This document shows, piece by piece, positions 21,329 to 31,480 of a stretch of 64,000 bases of DNA. The notes beneath the pieces were generated by a model, which saw nothing but the letters and a program-made list of their open reading frames with translations, did no database searches and was not told where the DNA came from. A program made the translations under genes and the position numbers. The stretch is from Orbicella franksi (taxonomy: Eukaryota), in NCBI GenBank assembly GCA_964199315.1, contig OZ116699.1:30938001-31002000 (forward strand), written 5' to 3'. Within the stretch, counting starts at the first letter, position 1. Every line of letters begins with the position of its first letter.

Positions 21329-23440
21329 TCAACTTCAACTCAAATTCACTTTATTTTGCACTTACATTTTGAAATTACAATATTAGCATAAAAAAAAAAA
21401 AAAGATACATATATAACAATTAAAGGTGACAATGGTATTGTCAAGCAAATTGATTTAGATCTTTAAACTTGTATGATATTTCTTGCCAAAGATCAATGAC
21501 CATAAATGAGATCATTTGTTTGCCAGTATTTGTTTTAACTCGGAATTTGTGAAGATTTTGATTGCCCGCATACCTGGTGTTACAATTATGTACGTTGCTG
21601 GCATACTGGAAAAAATGGTTAAAGAGTTCTGGCAAAATACCTTTGTGCCATGCATGTATGAATTTGAGAGCATGCAGGCGATATACATTTGTTATCGTTA
21701 AGATTTCCAAGATATTAAGTAAAGGTAGAGCACTATCGGTATTTTTGCCAGATAAAGTTGCAAAGAACATTGAAGTGAAAGACTTTATTTAATGAGGGTG
21801 ACCCGTTAACATTAACCTAATAACATAAGTTTGCTTAGTTTGTATTTTTGTAAATTTTTTTGCTGGTGCTGCCCTAGATTACAATAGCATACGAAATATA
21901 AGGATAAATAACTGAGATTTTAATTGATCTGCGTAAGATGTTTGAAAAGTAGATAATGCCTTAACTTAGAGATTACTCCTGTATTCCGTGAAAACTTCGC
22001 ACATACATACGAGATGTGGCATTTCCAAGTTAAAGAACTGTCGATCATTGTTTCCAAATGTTTAATGTGGTCCTTTTGTTCTATGGAGTGGCATGATCCA
22101 TCTCGGTTAGTTATATTTATATTAACATTCGTGTTCTTTTTCCTTTGAGATTTTACGATCATGTAATTGGTTTTCTTCCGATGTATTTTGTTTCGATGTT
22201 TTCTTTCGACTTGTTTCTGCCACACCATTCCTTAACTTTTTTTAGTTCTGAAATCATTTGCAATCCTAATGATTTTAAATCTTTTGCAGAAGCAAACAAG
22301 TTAGTATCGTCCGCAAATATCTTAAATGAAAGGACCTCAGAGCAATTAGGGAGGTCGTTGATGTATATCAAAAATAGGAAAGGACCTAACGAACTTCCTT
22401 GAGGGACACCGCAGACCACGGTTTGATAGGACGACTCAGTATCACCCAAGGCGACGTATTGTTTCCTTTTTGTAAGATCACTTTCAAACCAGGCCAGCGG
22501 TACCCCTATTATTCCGTATGATTCTAATTTTTGTAGAAGGATGCTGTGGTTAACCGTATCAAAAGCTTTCGAAAAGTCTAAGAAAATTCCACATGTATAC
22601 AGATTGTTGTCAATTGCTTTTCTTAAAGTATCCGCAATTTCAGTTATGGCTTGAGCGGTGGACCTTACCCTTGCGAAATCCAAATTGATATTCAAAAAGA
22701 ATGTCAAGTTTCTCAGCTCGAAATAGGAAATAAGTAGTTTGTAAACCAGTTTTTCAAATATTTGTGGAAGGGCTGACAGTGTTGAAATAGGACGGAAGTT
22801 CGTCGGGCCAATTATCTCGCCTCCTTTATCAACCGGCGTAATCTTTGATATTTTGAGAAGATTTGGCATAATTCCTTGCGAGAGCGATAAGTTGGAAAGT
22901 CTAGCTAGGGGTTCACTCATAAAATTGAATGCTAACTTAATGCACCTGGGGGGCGTACCTATAAAAGACTTATTTAGTTTTAGCCCAATCAACGCATCCT
23001 GAACTTCGAGATTGTAAATACCGCTGAACGTGACTGTTTTGGAGTCGCCCACGAATGAAATTAGTAGGACTTATATTGTAATTTGGGAGCTGTGCCGCGA
23101 AGTCTTGCCCAACATTTATAAAGTGACTGTTTAACTGACGACAAATACTTGCCTTATCATTGTAACACTTTCCTTTATATAAGAGTTTTTGAATTAACGT
23201 ACCCTGTTGGGCTTTCTTTCTGTTTATAATCGTTCCTATCAACTTCCACGTTGCTTTTAAGTTATCACTAAACATTTTAAATTGAGTTTTGAAGTAGTTT
23301 GTCTTTGAAGCTTCTTTTATTTTGTTCAGCTTTTTATTGTATTTCTTATAGTCTTTAACTTTGTTTGGGTCATTACTTATCCCAAACATGTTTTCTTTGT
23401 GTCTTTTGTTTTTTTTTTTAATGTTTAACTTCTTTCTCAC
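21329..23440 (-). mobile_element. 5'-truncated, degenerate CR1/L2-clade LINE (ORF2 RT region to 3' tail)
   Basis: ORF fragments 23440-22970, 23052-22159 (FRPIS, GIFLDFSKAFDTVNH, GVPQGSSLGPFLFLIYINDL, FADDTNL), 22228-21920 and 21770-21441; AATAAA and a short TTGAAG-repeat tail near 21330-21350. Confidence 0.9.
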
Positions 23441-24986
23441 TGCTACGGAATTTGTTACAATTTGTCATGTTAAAATACAAATATGGAAGCAAGGCTGTTA
23501 CTAGGTAGGAAACTTGGAACTAATCCCTGACGCTAACTTAACGCGACAACGACCGCATGATAGATCGAGTGGACCTGCAATGGGCACGATGATGTCAATT
23601 GTTTCACACTGAAAAACGGAGAGGAGTGACTAAACCCAGGCAGGAGCATACGCGCGTGCTCAATGAATTATTAGGTGCTACCGAGTGTGACATCAGGTGA
23701 AGCAGTAACAAAGTCTATTCTTTGTTCACATACAGCTTTCAGCTGAGATCTCGAAACTAAATTACCAGGGCAATACTGCAACGATTTTATCAGTTTAAAT
23801 GCACTTTTATGCGGTATTCGCTTATTACACTGTTTAACAAAGCTGTTGTAATACCTGCTTGCTAATTCTCTATGGTAAGTTTTCCTTGCTTGTTAAGAGC
23901 TTTGGTATTAAAAATGATGGCAAAAGAATTATTCAGTGGGAAAGATTTCTTGGATTTTGAACGAATTAACAAGCACAAACATTTTAAATTTAGTATAGAC
24001 TACGAATATTTCAGTATTCATTTTTTATGGAAAATATTTGACAGCACCAATTAGGAAAAATGTCATTTCACACCTTAATTTACTTTATGCGGCAGGAAGA
24101 AAAACCAGGTTTATCAAAAGCTAGTTAAACGCTCTCATCATTTCCTCAAAATAGGAGAAAAGAAACAAAAAATGGAAGAAAAATGAATTCATTACGAAGA
24201 AAGACAAAAAGCTTCAAATTATGGCAATGAACAAATATAAACAATAAAATGCTAACCAAAAGGTCCACGCAAAAATCAAGGCGTCGCGATTGGGTGAAAT
24301 CAGGTGGAATGTAAGAAAATGCAAATACAAATATTGCCAATTTTACTTGATAGACTTCGTTGCAGTAAAGATAAAACATTTCCAAAGTTAGAGACAGTTG
24401 ACACTTATAGCATCGCCAGTCTAGAAAAAAACAAAACAAAAAGACCCACAAGATATATATAATTAATGATGAAGAGATTCACAGGAAATAAATACAATTT
24501 GGTTGGTAAAATAGTGCCCTACCGTCAACACAACAAGAATTGCACTCTTAAGATAAGAAAACCACAAAGCTACAGGTCCAGATTGTTTGTAAGATCTTTA
24601 AAAGTTTCATTCGTGTTTCCGTAAATGTCTCGATTGTGGTTGATAGAAAATAGATACGGTGACTATTTTATTTTTATTTCACTGCGAAATTGCAAGCTGA
24701 GGGAAGGCATTATTGTAATTGGCAAAAATTACTCACCAGCGGGAATTCTCTGCGAGAAGAGTAAAATAAGCATATCATTTTGTCGTTCTTGTTCAAGGTG
24801 TGGGATGCTGTTGTGTTGTTTGAAACAAACTTGGTCGTATTTTCAGCAATGTAGCAATTCGACTTGTCGCTTCAGCGAAAAGGGCCGTTATTTTTGAGTT
24901 TTTACGCAATAATCCGTGGCTTTTGGAGTCGTCCAAGTCTGTTTACGCTGGAAATTGCGAATTTCCTTCGAGGGAAGGGACCCGCC

Positions 24987-27206
24987 ATGTTACCATCTCT
25001 TGCGCACTTCAAAACAGACAGGAAGAAATTGTTATTGTTGGAAGTACTAGAATTCTTCATAATCCTTCGACAAGGTAGGTTATCGCTTAAAACGAGTATT
25101 TCAACTATTTTAGTTGTTAACACCAGCATATATTGTCTTCAGGAGATTTAGCTTACGAAAGCAAATTTGCAACTGGTATGCATAAAGTAAAGAGTATTTG
25201 TTATCATTGGAAGGAATTAAAAAAAAACAGGTGATCATATTTTAAATTGGAAAACGTAAAAAAAGGTATGGTCGTGTCTAAATTCAATCAGATTGTCTGA
25301 AACTGAAGCAGAGCAGCTGTTTAGTATGCAATTTGCGAGATGAGCGCGACTATGGTATCGAACTGGAAGCTGGGTCGCTTCACGCGTTCCTTCCCTCGTA
25401 TTGGCAAGATTTGCAGTAAAGCGTTTTATGACCTGTACAGAATTCGGCAAATAACGAAATTCCTCAGTCCTGAGACATCCAAAACTCTTGTCCATGCATT
25501 CGTCGCTTGACCATATCTCCTCTCCCTTGTACGGCCTGCAATGGCTTCCTGTGATTTATAGTGTTCGGTTTTTAAAAAACTATTACTTCTTGTTTACAAA
25601 GCTCTTGATAATCAAGCACCTGACTTTATAAAGGACTTTATATAGACTTTACCACAACCTGTCGCTTGCGCACACTCCCAAGACCATAACCTCCTTGCTG
25701 TTCCCAGAACCAAACACAGGACATTCGGTGATCGCGCCTTTGCATACTCTGGACCTTTTCTCTGGAACAAACTTCCTCGTGAAATAAGACTTAGTCCAAC
25801 CCTGACTGTTTTTAAATCAAAGTTAAAAACTTACTTTTGTAAATTAGCGTATAGCATGCCATAGTTTTATAATATGATTTTTAAATTGTATTATTTTTAG
25901 AAACATTTTTCTTATATTTTTACTGCAAAACTAAATCTTACATTGTAAAACGCTTTAGAATATGTTATAATTTTAGCGCTAAATAAATCTATTATCATTA
26001 TCATTATCATTATCATAATTATTCGAGCAATTTTGCCAAACATTTTGTGGCACGCGTAGCAATAAGTTAGTGTGTCACAAGCGAATGTCGGTCGCAGCGA
26101 AATATCGTTTTTTTTATATTTTTGTCGCATTGATTTCTCGCAGTGTATGGAGACGAGGATGTTACATGTGAGCAAAGAACAAACGACGGCAAATGTTGTG
26201 TGCTTCCATTCACATACGAGGGACAAGAGACCTATTTCTGTACCAGAGGAGGTCCGTCCAACTTCCACTGGTGTGCGACAACCGATAACTACGACCGTGA
26301 CGGAGAATGGGGTATTTGCTCTGGTAAACATAAAATCGCTATTTACAGTTTAAAAGTAATTCTAAGTGCAATTTTTCTGCACCTTTGCGAGGCAAGTAGG
26401 GTGAAGTTGAATTCCTTACAGAGTAGGCATTGATTAACTCGGCAAGGTAATAAACGTCCCTTGTGCAATACTTCCTCGCAGCAGCCCCGGAAAGTGAACA
26501 TTTGAGGCATTTTTTTCTTTTGTAGGGAGTGTTACAATAACTTCTCGTCAAGATTGCAAGAGAAGATTACATAGTGAAACAACCAGACGTTTTTCTGCAC
26601 CACAACTTCGTTACACCCGCAAATCACATCCTAGTTTCCTGGCCTATAAGTGTGATCACACCATTTCCAAGAAGAATTTCCATCTACATAAGCATGTGAC
26701 AGCGATTTGTTTCAGGTGCACTAACGGCCATATAGCGTCGCACTAGCTACAGGTGTTGTGTTAAGAGGAGCTATAGTGAGTCGCTCAGTGCCATAGAATT
26801 GAACTAGCCTTGGGGTTTGGAAATTGTCAGACTTATCTACTATAACCCGGTTTTTTTCTGTTGTTGTTTGACTTCCCTAGGTGTGAAATGTTACATCTGC
26901 ACAAGTGGGATCTCATTATCTGACTGTGAATCTCACCAAGAAGCTCACAACTGCCCGTACATGTACGACCAATGTCTGACTCTCAGCAAGGAAAGATTAA
27001 CAAACTCCACCAAACTCTTCCACAAGAAATGCACCTCTAATACACTGTGTACTGCCTACAATCCGACATGTGAGGGGCTGGATGTGATCAAATGTGACTT
27101 TAGTTGTTGTATGGGAGATTACTGCAACACTGGCTCGCGTTGTGTGAAACTTGGGAGTTTTGTTCCGTTGGTTACAGCTGCTTGGGCTTATTACGTGTAC
27201 GATTGA
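24987..27206 (+). CDS. Putative secreted/GPI-anchored protein: signal peptide, fibronectin type II domain and Ly6/uPAR (three-finger) domain, about 197 aa
   Basis: Exons 24987-25074 (gccATG, hydrophobic LLLLEVLEFFIIL, donor G|GTAGGT; least certain exon), 26144-26323 (FN2: GKCCVLPFTYEG..CT..WCATTDNYDRDGEWGIC) and 26881-27206 (KCYIC...CCMGDYCN, then a hydrophobic tail). Both introns are phase 1; total 594 nt in frame. Confidence 0.8.
25390..26020 (+). mobile_element. L2-clade LINE 3' fragment in intron 1 of the FN2-LU gene
   Basis: Broken frames ICSKAFYDLYRIRQI..LVHAFV, LQWLPV, LLVYKAL, FGDRAF..LWNKLP..FKSKLKTYF; (ATTATC)n tail at about 25990-26015. Confidence 0.8.
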
Positions 27207-27247
27207 GCCAGGAACAAGATTGAGACAAATCATATGACGGTTTTTTT

Positions 27248-27477
27248 AGAGCGGTTTCCACTTGATCATGAGTGTCGTAGTAGCCACTCTAGCCAGTCAG
27301 AAATTACACAGAAAATCAAGTGAACCAAACAATGTGAGCGCGCGAATCGTGATTGGTTTTGGTCTTCCTTGTGATTGGTTGAGAAAGTAGCGCTTGATCT
27401 TTTTAAACTAATTGCTAAGCATAGTGAAGCAAAAACAAATGCAAGGTACTTTTGACACTTTACTGAAAACCGCTCCA
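27248..27477. mobile_element. MITE of the TAGAGCGGTTTTCA family
   Basis: TAGAGCGGTTTCCA ... TGAAAACCGCTCCA; related copy at about 28690-28850 (GAGCAGTTTTCAATTGAGTGT / ACACTCAATTGAAAACTGCTC). Confidence 0.6.
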
Positions 27478-27677
27478 TATACCTTTTTCGACTGGGCGGT
27501 TTGTTGCCCCATTTCAGACCATGTGATGATACTCTGGAGAATTCTTCCGTTCAAATTTTCAAATAGTCGTCTGCAAAAGAATAAATAATTTTAAGACGGA
27601 TAAAAGAACAATTTTCTAGAGAATATCGCGTGGTCTATAATGGGAAAACAAACCGCCCAAGCGAAAAAGGTCTATTG
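27478..27677. mobile_element. MITE with about 29 bp imperfect TIRs
   Basis: ACCTTTTTCGACTGGGCGGTTTGTT / AACAAACCGCCCAAGCGAAAAAGGT. Confidence 0.65.
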
Positions 27678-28945
27678 ATCACCAGAGATGGTGTGAGACA
27701 GAATTTAGCATACTGACGAATTCATTTATGGACAAAAGTGTAAGCCGAGAAATAAGTGCAATTTATTAAAGAGCCTACCGCTAGCCATGCTGGGGAATTG
27801 TAAACAAAACAAGGACTAACCCCTTTCAAATTTTGTCATTACCTTGTTACATCATGTAATTTTGGCTCTTAAAGGGCATTTGAAAGCTAATTTATGGCAG
27901 TTAGTTTATTACAAACTATTGACGGTGGTTATATAAAATATAAACTCTTGTTACAACTACATCTAGGAACTTGGCAACTCTAGATGTAGAAAGCAATATC
28001 TTGAAGAAAAGATTTAGCAATGCAAAACCTGTCTCCAGTTCTCCAGGCACTGAGGACTCAATAAACTTTACACAAAACATTAGCTATAAGCTTTAACTCT
28101 AGTATACTTTAAGTCATATACAAAAGTACTATTTATCAAGTTTTGAACTAGGAGTAGCAAACAAGGTAAAAACCAATGAGCAGTGCAAAATGCTAGAAAT
28201 AGTGTCCAGCCATTAGATGTTGAGTTTACAATTTTTCTTACCAGCCAGAGTTCTCTATTTGGTAACAAAATGATGAATACTTGCAATTTATCCGACAGAA
28301 GGTTGTTCTGATTGGGATGACTGTTAAATACATGCACTACAAGCTTTTTTTTTCAACATCAGAAAACTGATTTAAAAAGATGGTGCCTATTTGGTTTCTA
28401 GTTATTGTTTAGTTCCACTGATAGGTGACTGGAAAAGGGAGAATATGAAAAAAGGTGTAGAATTTTTCAATGGTTTCTACCAACTGCAACGAAAGGACCA
28501 CTCCAAGACGTGGTCCTCAATTTCCATGCAATATTCCCAGAAAATTTCTGTTCAGTCATTTACTGGTACTTTCCAACCAAATGTTTTACTTAAATGGTAA
28601 GCACCCAAGGTCAGTGTCTCAAATCCCCTTTCTCATTTGTAATATACATTTGACATCCCTCCCCTGTTTTTTTTTTCTTTCTGTGACATTTGAGCAGTTT
28701 TCAATTGAGTGTCGTAAAACCAAAACCAAACTAATTACTTACCAGTTACACCACTCAGCCAATCTCAAACTGTAGTAAAACAAAGACCAAAACCAATGAC
28801 AGTAATAACCTGTGGTGATTACTTTCAACACTCAATTGAAAACTGCTCTATAAAGAGCTGTGCTCTCACAACCTGTTTAGCTGAATTTGTTACTGATATG
28901 TAACAGAGAAGTTATGAATTAATCAGTCCTGGAAATTGAAAAGTG

Positions 28946-31480
28946 TCATCTTCTCCCTCCTCTAAACACAACAGGCTCAGGTTCATGACCAAAGCTTGAG
29001 TCCAATCTACCTCCATCACCTGTACACCGAAGGAAAAAGACAGTGCATTTATGAAAGACTGTTTCAAAATTAAATGGTGGTTTCAGTTATTATTGATTTG
29101 TGCAGTTTCAAGAAGACTCCATGGTAATCCCAAGAAGGTCATTAGACATTCTGAGCAGGAGGTGGGCAGGGAAGGGGGGGAGGGGGGGGGGGAAGGGGGA
29201 TGTGTGTGTTGGTTGGCTAAGTTTTTGAAGGAAGTAAGACCCTAAACTGGAATTCCCAAAGGAAAGTTCAAGACACAAACCTTCGGTGGGACTGGAATTA
29301 ATATTTTAAGGGTAAAGACATTCAGCATTTCATATCTTCATTTAACAAACATGGCACAACATTTTGAAATACATGTCAGTTACACGATGAAATATGTCCT
29401 TAAAAAGGTGTATTGTGTGTTTTAATGTTTACATTCAGCCTTTCACAAGATAAAGCACACCATTTAACATAAAATTCAGTGTCTTCAGTACCTCTATCTT
29501 GAACATGCAGCAATCCCTCTGGATTTCCTCTTGAATGTATATCTGATCAAAACAATGGAAGTGAAATGACACTATTAAGAGATGCCAGATGCTCCTAACA
29601 TAAGATAACTGCAAAACAAAGATCTGATCAAATGTTGCAGGGCCACTGTGGATCAATGTGTTAAGTCCCTTCCAGAATCACAGGGGACCCTGTGCAGGTT
29701 ATGGTCATGTAGCCTCTTCAACATTGGGTCATTCTGTTTCTTTTTTTCACTTAGCATTGAATGCACTAAATCTTCACGTTATACAGAAGGGAAGAAATCA
29801 TGATTGTAGCAATAAGAAAAACAATTCTTAATATGAACTCTTTCCTGTGAGACTAAATACAAATTTATAATAACAACTTCCCCATGATCGTAGAGATTGA
29901 TATTTAAAACAAACAAACCGACAAAAAAAATTAGTGCTATGTACTTCTTGTCACAGAGGAGTGATATGAGTAAGTATCAAAGTGTCTGGGTATTTAACAA
30001 TGTTCAATGTACATCATCACAGTTACAAGGTAACAGAGCATTGTACTAACCTCTTGAGACAGGCCTTAACAATGACTCATCCTTCAGTCCTCTCAATCTT
30101 CTTCCATCGCTGTGGCCTCCTTGAAGAAAATGAGCTAAAATGCCATACAAAAGTGGCCTACAAGAAAACAGCAATCTTTCTGTAATCTGTGCTTGCAAAA
30201 ATCTAAAAGATTTTGGATAAGGTAAATGGTGTAAACCATGATAGTAAGAGGAATCTGCCAAAACTGAAAGCTGAAGCAGACAATGCACATATCAAGTTGC
30301 TGAAATTTGAAAATTCCATTGATTTACTCTACTGGATCAAATAAATGTTCATGGTTGTGTAATACACTATATTCAGGAAGTCTTAGCTCGAGTAAATCCA
30401 TGTATAGAAATTATAATGTAATCCTCTTACATGGAGGGTGATGTAGAGTCTCGCTCTGTGATGTTAAGCTCTTGAACAAGAAATTGTCTGTCCATTGGTT
30501 CTTTGGGTTGACCTGTCTCTGGGATTACATGTAATACAATGGAAGAACAGGCATTAGGGTGACTGTGTCACAGGGAAATTTGAACAGTGAAGAAATTCAG
30601 TTTTCCATGATATTCAGAACAATCAAAGTCTCTTAACTGGTGGCAGTCTCAGCCTTCAGCTTTGCCTGATAACACCACACCCTTGATTATTCCTCACATT
30701 ACAAAAAACCTCATTCAATATGCTCAATTGTTCTATTTAACATCGATTTCTAGCACATGTAGACATACATAGTCTGACTCATAATCATTATCATTTTCAT
30801 AAAAAAATTGCAATTCGCTAATCAGAAGCCATTCCTTTGTCATGATATCCTGTAATACCAAGACACTGGTCTGATATGGCCAGATTCGTGGCCACATTTA
30901 GGTGTCATGGTAAATAATAAATCATGTTTTGGTGGCATATCAGGCATGGTTGGTCTTGAGTCGACCAAACTCAGTAGTCACCCACTTCATGCATGTATTA
31001 AAGAAAGTTCTACCTGCTAAAAGGACTGACTCCGTGTATTTGTATTTGTTGAATGCCAAGTATTCTCTGATAAGTTCATTGATTAACAAGTTCTCATTGG
31101 AAAGTACAGGTCTTGCTTCTGACTAAAATAATATTGAACAGATTTAACAGAATAGCGTCAGCGTGATTGATTTTAAATTATAAGCTTGAGCTTAACTTGA
31201 CACACAAGGCACACAAGGATACTCAAAACAACAGTAGGTGCAAACTTCGTTTACTTGATCGTCCAAAGCGCCGAAGACTTCTGCACGAACTCGAGCGCGA
31301 ATTTGACCAAGAACTCCTCTGTTTTCTAAGGTTTCTTTTAACACTGATACGAATGCAAAATAAGCAATTCTTACATTTACGTTTAACCAACAAATCAGAG
31401 AAAAGAACTTAATAAGAATGACACATTTAGTGACAATTTGTGTGCAGCGTACCACTTTTCAGCTCGTCCACTGTCGCCAT
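28946..31480 (-). CDS. FOPNL: FOP-related centrosomal protein (LisH domain), about 164 aa
   Basis: Exons 31480-31453 (MATVDELKS), 31343-31255 (LKETLENRGVLGQIRARVRAEVF), 31122-31014 (ENLLINELIREYLAFNKY), 30518-30431, 30157-30051 (PLLYGIL), 29019-28946. Phases are consistent (495 nt). The last exon is the least certain. Confidence 0.88.

Follow-up and report, generated by a model that had tools for sequence, protein, structure and literature searches.

The FN2-LU gene and its transcripts

The window, that is, the whole stretch of 64,000 nucleotides analyzed here (Orbicella franksi contig OZ116699.1, positions 30,938,001 to 31,002,000, forward strand), is eukaryotic DNA with a GC content of about 0.35-0.45 and no N. 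It harbors a gene that joins a fibronectin type II (FN2) domain to a Ly6/uPAR (LU) three-finger domain, referred to below as the FN2-LU gene. Joining 24987-25074, 26144-26323, and 26881-27206 on the plus strand yielded a 594-nt coding sequence, with 197 codons and then TGA. These three exons had been proposed from the sequence alone, and their boundaries and phases proved to be exact. When the junction sites were inspected in the sequence, both introns were of the GT..AG type and in phase 1, cutting after the first base of a codon, so that exon 2 is a symmetrical 1-1 exon. The 5' splice sites read gtaggt after exon 1 and gtaaac after exon 2, and introns 1 and 2 end in tcgcag and ccctag, respectively. 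Both junctions and the start codon were confirmed in a close relative, and the gene model is regarded as settled. The locus is almost certainly an intact, expressed stony-coral gene with the FN2 plus LU architecture. The gene is present in databases but undescribed; it belongs to the Ly6/uPAR superfamily, carries FN2 as an extra domain, and is conserved across reef-building corals.

The confirmation came from L012, a 962-nt mRNA contig of the close relative, which encodes without interruption the 197-residue protein P0060 (also P0122, from JGI). P0060 aligned with the window protein without gaps, with 172 of 197 residues identical (87%), and the two share an unusual stretch of 13 extra residues ahead of the signal peptide's hydrophobic core. 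In a blastn alignment, bases 1-305, 304-486, and 485-847 of L012 fell on window positions 24800-25074, 26142-26324, and 26880-27242, and these blocks start and stop at the predicted exon borders. L012 also indicated that the 5' untranslated region (UTR) within exon 1 is at least 187 nt long. In RNA of O. franksi itself, one contig of X1, a coral metatranscriptome run, joins 25074 to 26144 at a GT..AG joint. Of the two junctions whose confirmation in RNA the original prediction had proposed, 25074/26144 was thus found in an own-species contig, and 26323/26881 only in the mRNA contig of the relative. The locus had been taken for one gene rather than two, and this view held, as the relative's mRNA contig and the ortholog proteins contain the signal peptide, FN2, LU, and tail in a single frame. 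Exon 3 was detected at 0.90-0.94 of the sampled words in poly(A) RNA runs labeled with O. franksi and was present in 14 RNA runs from 11 studies; the whole 2.5-kb locus reached at most 0.53 of words in any RNA run. Table 1 lists the features.

Table 1. Features of the FN2-LU gene and of neighboring genes in the window. L012 is the relative's mRNA contig, P0060 and P0122 are its protein, AF2 is the AlphaFold2 model of P0060, and dN/dS (ratio of nonsynonymous to synonymous substitution rates) is given against L012.
Feature	Position in window	Strand	Evidence
5' UTR, part of exon 1 (minimum extent)	24800..24986	+	L012 bases 1-305 align contiguously to 24800-25074; X1 RNA contig 24908-25074 stops exactly at exon end
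Coding portion of exon 1, from Met1 into codon 30 (first base): signal peptide n-region and hydrophobic core	24987..25074	+	First ATG of the open frame, G at -3; extended N-terminus also in P0060 and P0122; AF2 helix 12-31
Intron 1 (gt..ag, phase 1), with transposon-derived fragment at ~25340-25880	25075..26143	+	Splice sites; X1 RNA contig with GT..AG joint 25072>26142 (cut +2)
Exon 2 (phase 1-1): whole FN2, preceded by last part of signal peptide (cleavage predicted after residue 32, VYG)	26144..26323	+	Splice sites, Pfam; in orthologs -1 Gly invariant, -3 mostly Val
FN2 domain core (Pfam PF00040), residues 48-88	26197..26319	+	Pfam 59.3 bits, 1-42/42; PDB sequence and fold matches
Intron 2 (gt..ag, phase 1), retained in own-species RNA contigs	26324..26880	+	X1 contig 26142-27227 contiguous; the relative's mRNA L012 lacks it
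Exon 3: LU domain, C-terminal tail, TGA stop	26881..27206	+	Splice sites, Pfam; 0.90-0.94 of words in own-species poly(A) RNA runs
Ly6/uPAR three-finger domain, Cys93 to Asn172, 12 Cys, ending CCMGDYCN	26889..27128	+	Pfam LU-clan matches; 39-domain alignment; Foldseek; dN/dS 0.02
N-glycosylation sequon Asn131-Ser-Thr, middle finger of LU	27003..27011	+	Sequence; kept in most orthologs and in the paralog family
C-terminal tail, 25 residues, predicted glycosylphosphatidylinositol (GPI) attachment signal	27129..27203	+	Ortholog layout; AF2 helix 180-196; dN/dS 0.44
FOP_dimer/LisH gene	~28.9-31.6 kb	-	Shared gene order
LRR_9 gene	~31.9-34.6 kb	+	Shared gene order
Large WD40 gene	from ~38.4 kb	-	Next in Pocillopora locus

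Several public open reading frames (ORFs; P0074, P0075, P0070, P0076, and P0078), called on contigs that are unspliced or genomic, extend from intron 1 across the FN2 exon and on into intron 2; as FN2-only versions of the FN2-LU gene and its orthologs, these predictions are artefacts. Within intron 1, the fragment at 25340-25880 contains short ORFs that resemble a retroelement protein in its C-terminal part, followed by an A/T-rich tail, and an ATC/ATT microsatellite lies at about 25983-26026. RNA contig depth on this fragment rises to about 130, far above that of the exons, and is patchy at 25470-25970, as is typical of repeats.

The FN2 module

Exon 2 was expected to encode a complete FN2 domain, and it matched the whole Pfam model (PF00040, positions 1-42 of 42) with 59.3 bits (cut-off 22.2) and an E value of 3.5e-16. 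All family members tested (10 of 10) matched the same model. The module has six cysteines, namely, the canonical four and an upstream pair, Cys38-x8-Cys47 (26167-26196), and such an N-terminal C-x8-C pair is common to other coral FN2 proteins. Alignment with the modules of MMP-9, MMP-2, and fibronectin located the four cysteines and the aromatic core (FPF/WC/YD/WG), which are invariant in the orthologs; the window copy has LPF in place of FPF.

The closest sequences to exon 2 in the PDB were the FN2 modules of MMP-9, MMP-2, and fibronectin, at about 33-41 bits per module, and the FN2 of MRC2 was a weaker match (35 bits). The MMP and fibronectin modules share the four cysteines, the aromatic core, and the fold with the coral domain. 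The coral protein differs in that it has a single module, an extra N-terminal cysteine pair, and one residue fewer in the loop before WC, and has LU as the neighbor of its FN2 in place of a protease or FN1 modules. Foldseek matched the FN2 part to FXII FnII, IGF2R FN2, and MMP-2 in the PDB with 45-49% identity, probability 1.00, and a root-mean-square deviation of 1.7-3.3. Our structure model is the AF2 model of P0060, the closest full-length ortholog (87% identical), built with a 39-row alignment. Its mean predicted local distance difference test (pLDDT) score was 76.8, with 83-90 in FN2 and 80-95 in LU, and low-confidence helices were placed at 12-31 and 180-196.

The LU domain

The translation contains the CCMGDYCN end of the LU domain and, after it, the hydrophobic tail, both as first described. 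The domain had been classed as a 10-cysteine type; counting in the sequence gave 12. They are spaced 2,8,8,6,18,5,6,7,3,0,4, with an extra pair in the third finger, and a 13th cysteine in the C-terminal tail is not conserved. Among 39 aligned LU domains, 11 cysteines and the terminal Asn were invariant, and the remaining cysteine (C153) was present in at least 90%.

Against Pfam, exon 3 reached 21.7 bits with Toxin_TOLIP (PF00087; cut-off 21.2), which is marginal, and gave weaker matches to UPAR_LY6_2 and Activin_recp. This marginal score is backed by LU-clan matches across the family: each LU-clan model matched 2-3 of the 10 family sequences scanned, UPAR_LY6 (PF00021) reached 31 bits (cut-off 24.8) in the paralog family described below, and precomputed PF00021 matches exist on three predictions that contain only the LU exon and belong to the group with one FN2 (P0006, P0007, and P0010). 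In Foldseek against the PDB, the LU part matched uPAR, Lynx1, PSCA, C4.4A, erabutoxin, muscarinic toxin MT7, and denmotoxin, all with probability 1.00. A phmmer search of the LU exon against PDB sequences gave no match at E values up to 1. Cluster representatives of the AlphaFold Database matched the LU part only, the best being cnidarian LU proteins, including a Nematostella 'UPAR/Ly6 domain-containing protein'; no cluster entry spanned both domains, which is not evidence of absence since that library lacks single-member folds.

Two other assignments of the domain were considered and rejected: an activin-receptor-type ectodomain (Pfam E 0.17), and a role as a toxin, in view of the membrane-anchor tail and the lack of a venom context.

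Predicted targeting signals and selection

At the N-terminus of the protein, a basic n-region leads into a hydrophobic core, and a V-x-G motif follows, the Gly of which does not vary among the orthologs. We consider it very probable that the product enters the secretory pathway. At the other end, inspection of the tail revealed the pattern N-T-G, S-R-C-V-K, and then 14-17 hydrophobic residues. In all orthologs, 25-29 residues follow the CN motif, with small residues at Asn, +1, and +2 and a short polar spacer, and in all orthologs with one FN2 the hydrophobic stretch of about 14-17 residues extends to within one residue of the C-terminus, without a cytoplasmic tail. Small residues, a polar spacer, and a hydrophobic C-terminal end are the usual rule for a GPI-attachment signal, as in CD59 or PSCA. 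The suggestion that the tail looks like such a signal was supported by a layout conserved in every ortholog and by relaxed dN/dS. The protein is probably GPI-anchored, as far as these features allow prediction. In the window copy, the best 12-residue mean hydrophobicity of the tail is 1.51, which is moderate.

Comparison with L012 gave a dN/dS of 0.14 for the whole protein. The two termini were relaxed (0.55 in the signal region, 0.44 in the C-terminal tail) relative to the constrained domains (0.18 in FN2, 0.02 in LU), a contrast that fits cleaved targeting peptides, which need only hydrophobicity. Against Pocillopora the overall value was 0.12. Judged from these ratios, the gene is clearly functional and its LU domain appears nearly frozen. 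The very low dN/dS of LU suggests that interaction of this domain with a partner is the more constrained function.

Orthologs and gene order

Proteins of the same build, 176-187 residues long, were found in Oculina patagonica, Pocillopora verrucosa, P. damicornis, P. meandrina, Porites lutea, and Montipora foliosa. Their database names are 'uncharacterized' or 'hypothetical', and such sequences also occur on many transcript contigs. The Oculina patagonica ortholog is 77% identical over the LU exon. Gene order in the window recurs at the Pocillopora verrucosa and Oculina patagonica loci, where the FOP_dimer/LisH gene (minus strand) and then the LRR_9 gene (plus strand) come after FN2-LU. In Oculina, a myosin gene lies upstream of FN2-LU, and the window aligns to this myosin gene at 15.4-17.7 kb. 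This shared gene order indicates that the Pocillopora verrucosa and Oculina loci are true orthologs. An LU-only ORF, P0014 (48% identity), grouped beside the clade with one FN2 and might be a more distant ortholog; its contig begins 10 nt before the ORF, too late to include an upstream FN2 exon.

A paralog family and the origin of the architecture

An exhaustive phmmer search of the LU exon against 1.84 billion representatives returned 52 matches. Among them, FN2 was present only in the ortholog cluster and in two further clusters, which have two FN2 modules. A further profile search added members with two FN2 modules, namely, A. millepora 'fibronectin-like isoform X1', A. cervicornis KAK2563807.1, and several transcript clusters. 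In total, 37 collected proteins have both FN2 and LU, and all of those with a named organism are from Scleractinia. Judged from these named members, the family appears to be confined to stony corals. The original prediction named no characterized protein made of just these two domains. This stands insofar as we found no paper on one, but the architecture itself is already in databases, from at least seven coral species, under the names 'uncharacterized protein' or 'fibronectin-like'.

The O. franksi genome also contains an FN2-FN2-LU paralog (C2:33.593-33.5955 Mb), about 2.6 Mb away and with one domain per exon. The paralog family has the same module types in the same order, likewise one domain per exon, and LU domains that group with those of the FN2-LU orthologs. 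It differs in having two FN2 modules, an LU identity to the window gene of about 32%, and, in some members, residues past the hydrophobic stretch. Of the two FN2 modules of the paralog, it was the LU-proximal one with which the single FN2 of the window gene aligned. A tree of 74 LU domains gave each subfamily a support of 97 and joined the two at a Shimodaira-Hasegawa-like approximate likelihood ratio test (SH-aLRT) value of 84. This topology fits one origin of the FN2 plus LU fusion, followed by duplication into lines with one and two FN2 modules. Both subfamilies occur in the Complexa and Robusta lines, and the architecture probably arose once, before these two lines of Scleractinia split. 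Exon shuffling, proposed earlier as its source, predicts what was found, each domain lying on its own phase-1/1 exon.

Other FN2 and LU exons are clustered elsewhere in the same genome. At C14:5.398-5.452 Mb, 20 or more FN2-type exons are densely packed in tandem on one strand and probably belong to multi-FN2 'epididymal sperm-binding protein 1-like' genes; smaller FN2 clusters lie at C3 3.92-4.01 Mb, C1 9.81-9.86 Mb, and C2 5.74-5.79 Mb. Clusters of LU exons at C4:9.51-9.92 Mb and C2:38.83-38.91 Mb point to tandemly expanded Ly6/uPAR genes.

Proposed function and alternative readings

The reading we favor, with moderate confidence, is that shuffled phase-1/1 exons gave rise to a GPI-anchored FN2-LU protein that couples a matrix ligand to a membrane partner. 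The 197-residue precursor would consist of a cleavable signal peptide, FN2, the 12-cysteine LU with one N-glycan site, and a hydrophobic C-terminal propeptide. The mature form would most likely comprise about 140 residues, anchored by GPI on the outer face of the plasma membrane, with GPI presumably linked to the Asn of the terminal CN motif or immediately behind it. In this orientation, LU would lie beside the membrane and FN2 would point outward. The aromatic pocket of FN2 might hold an extracellular ligand, for which collagen or denatured collagen of the mesoglea or the organic matrix is a better candidate than a choline-bearing lipid, and the nearly invariant LU could engage a conserved protein partner, in cis or in trans. 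The protein would then link a matrix ligand with a membrane partner as uPAR does. GPI-anchored uPAR couples vitronectin and uPA to integrins. For now, what is well supported is the annotation of the FN2-LU gene; its function is inferred and does not amount to a demonstrated new mechanism.

Several observations weigh against this reading. The signal core of the window copy contains two Glu and has a hydrophobicity of 2.32, compared with 3.2 in the nearest ortholog, which has no Glu there. Anchoring is argued from rules of thumb and patterns of selection. In FN2, the third position before the second cysteine, which is Tyr in MMP-2 and MMP-9, is T, H, Y, M, or Q among the orthologs, so the binding pocket may differ from that of gelatin-binding FN2 modules; given this variable position, we consider collagen or matrix binding by the FN2 module somewhat less likely than not. 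Binding of matrix or symbionts by the protein, as suggested at the outset, is pure inference. The node that implies a single origin has only moderate support, from 88 columns. As for RNA, the X1 contig that joins exons 1 and 2 continues uninterrupted over 26142-27227 and thus retains intron 2, and the junction 26323/26881 was not seen in the own-species RNA examined (the X1 contigs and two poly(A) runs). Each of those two runs contributed about 10 million poly(A) read records, and depth on the gene was zero, which indicates that its expression was very low in those samples.

One alternative is that the main product in O. franksi is an FN2-only protein made by retention of intron 2, or that the FN2 and LU exons belong to separate genes. 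The only spliced own-species contig does retain intron 2, and ORFs of the read-through type (the P0074 cluster, with eight members) have been called on public contigs. These ORFs also read through the end of intron 1, however, and thus derive from unspliced or genomic contigs. Other X1 contigs cover intron 1 and the upstream DNA, meaning that the X1 library contains unspliced RNA or DNA, and intergenic DNA is present in it at similar depth. Moreover, the exons are joined in frame in the relative's mRNA and in every ortholog model, and the LU exon, which has neither its own start codon nor a signal peptide, is under very strong purifying selection. We therefore regard an FN2-only product or two separate genes as very improbable. 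The intron-2-retaining RNA of X1, if translated, would give the signal peptide, FN2, and a 36-residue read-through; it is probably pre-mRNA.

The remaining alternatives accept one gene and concern what its protein does. A soluble secreted protein, similar to SLURP, three-finger toxins, or the FN2-only seminal and epididymal proteins, would have a C-terminus that is not a GPI signal. Secreted LU proteins exist (PMC13719153), as do secreted FN2-only proteins (ELSPBP1-like matches), and the terminal stretch of the window copy is no more than moderately hydrophobic. The orthologs, by contrast, all keep this stretch at a constant distance from CN while its sequence drifts, and a kept position combined with a drifting sequence is the signature of a processing signal rather than of a folded or dispensable end, which makes secretion in soluble form unlikely. 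Slightly less likely still is a type I membrane protein whose C-terminal helix serves as a transmembrane anchor. Some LU proteins use such a helix (PMC13719153), the AF2 model places a helix at 180-196, and two paralogs with two FN2 modules (P0155 and P0156) have 12-24 further, partly basic residues past the hydrophobic stretch; the FN2-LU gene and its orthologs, however, have only the stretch of about 14-17 residues, with no basic stop-transfer sequence or cytoplasmic tail. It has also to be considered that LU is the working part, a modulator of the Lynx or sleepless type acting in cis on a ligand-gated channel or another receptor, and that FN2 merely localizes or tunes it. LU is by far the most constrained part of the protein (dN/dS 0.02, versus 0.18 in FN2), and Lynx1 and 'Protein sleepless' are among its fold matches. 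Yet its fold is no more similar to Lynx1 than to uPAR, PSCA, or toxins, no solved LU protein matched at the sequence level, and FN2 is also under purifying selection and kept in every ortholog. This modulator reading seems to us about as unlikely as soluble secretion, and the GPI-anchored coupling protein remains the one we prefer.

Comparison with known LU and FN2 proteins

The coral protein shares with CD59, Lynx1, PSCA, and uPAR the LU fold, the CCxxxxCN motif, and an N-glycan site, together with a predicted N-terminal signal and a short hydrophobic tail of the GPI type, likewise predicted. It differs from them in its added N-terminal FN2 and in having 12 cysteines rather than 8-10, the extra pair being in the third finger. 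FN2 and LU modules also operate together at the cell surface in the case of uPARAP/Endo180 (MRC2) and uPAR, but there they belong to two separate vertebrate proteins. The original prediction had seen in the coral gene two modules of this pair joined in one chain. The parallel is an analogy only. In sequence, the coral FN2 resembles the modules of MMP-9, MMP-2, and fibronectin more closely than those of the mannose-receptor family.

Most Ly6/uPAR proteins consist of LU alone or have the domain on receptor kinases. A conserved FN2 plus LU fusion with a near-frozen LU points to a specific receptor-ligand system at the coral cell surface and is a clean example of domain shuffling via phase-1/1 exons in a non-bilaterian. 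With its apparent confinement to stony corals and its two ancient subfamilies, the family is a tractable candidate for studies of cell-matrix attachment, calcifying-tissue biology, or partner recognition.

Our literature search found nothing on the FN2-LU gene, its accessions, or the FN2 plus LU combination. Two matches for 'fibronectin type II' and calicoblast were rejected, as they actually concerned fibronectin type III. A 2026 survey of invertebrate LU proteins covered 13 cnidarian genomes with 563 LU proteins and reported new architectures, including a cnidarian Kunitz plus LU (PMC13719153). LU is there likewise fused to other extracellular modules, but the cnidarian example is Kunitz plus LU and not FN2 plus LU; the latter is not among the architectures of that paper, whose text never mentions 'fibronectin'.

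The only coral LU protein that we found with experimental data is Pdcyst-rich of Pocillopora damicornis (GenBank FJ628421), which was immunolocalized to the calicoblastic ectoderm and whose transcript falls about 100-fold under heat stress, before bleaching (PMC2728513). Its layout resembles the one predicted for the FN2-LU protein: a signal peptide precedes a single LU, and there are an N-glycan site and a putative GPI-attachment signal; it differs in being LU-only, 147 residues long, and without FN2. The peptide used for its immunization was absent from all FN2-LU-related proteins collected, and Pdcyst-rich is thus a different gene. Its location demonstrates that a coral LU protein can be associated with the tissue that forms the skeleton (PMC2728513). 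One could go further and regard the FN2-LU proteins as an innovation of stony corals, GPI-anchored receptors on calicoblastic or desmocyte cells that hold collagen or skeletal organic matrix through FN2 and signal through a conserved partner of LU. The scleractinian-only named members, the presence of both subfamilies in Complexa and Robusta, and the calicoblastic Pdcyst-rich (PMC2728513) allow such a skeleton-facing receptor and no more, and we consider it unlikely. If true, it would tie lineage-specific exon shuffling to the origin of the scleractinian skeleton.

CpG content and neighboring repeats

The observed/expected CpG ratio was 0.86 over the FN2-LU locus and 0.80-0.98 at 24-28 kb, compared with 0.15 at 28-30 kb and 0.31 at 32-34 kb, where two small neighboring genes lie. 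The contrast with housekeeping neighbors that had been proposed therefore holds for the immediate downstream genes. It does not extend further, since the ratio is equally high (0.81-1.0) at 38-50 kb inside the large WD40 gene, exon 3 alone has 0.50, and intron 1 contains a repeat. The link from CpG content to inducible expression comes from general knowledge of gene-body methylation in corals. With no poly(A) raw reads from O. franksi on the FN2-LU gene, regulated or low expression is plausible.

Repeats flank the gene on both sides. Upstream, on the minus strand at 21441-23440, two ORFs of 297 and 156 residues carry reverse-transcriptase motifs (…FADD…), and the element looks like a degraded retrotransposon without long terminal repeats (non-LTR). 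Just downstream, at 27479-27672, there is a foldback repeat with terminal inverted repeats that resembles a miniature inverted-repeat transposable element (MITE), with an X1 depth of about 2900. A microRNA gene at this foldback was rejected, as an Rfam scan of 24000-29500 returned only MIR4208, with 37 vs 140 bits. A second MITE-like element with inverted ends lies at 28690-28850, with a related piece at 27250-27300 and an RNA contig depth of more than 17000; a copy of it is also found in the 3' UTR of the relative's mRNA (L012 bases 846-879).

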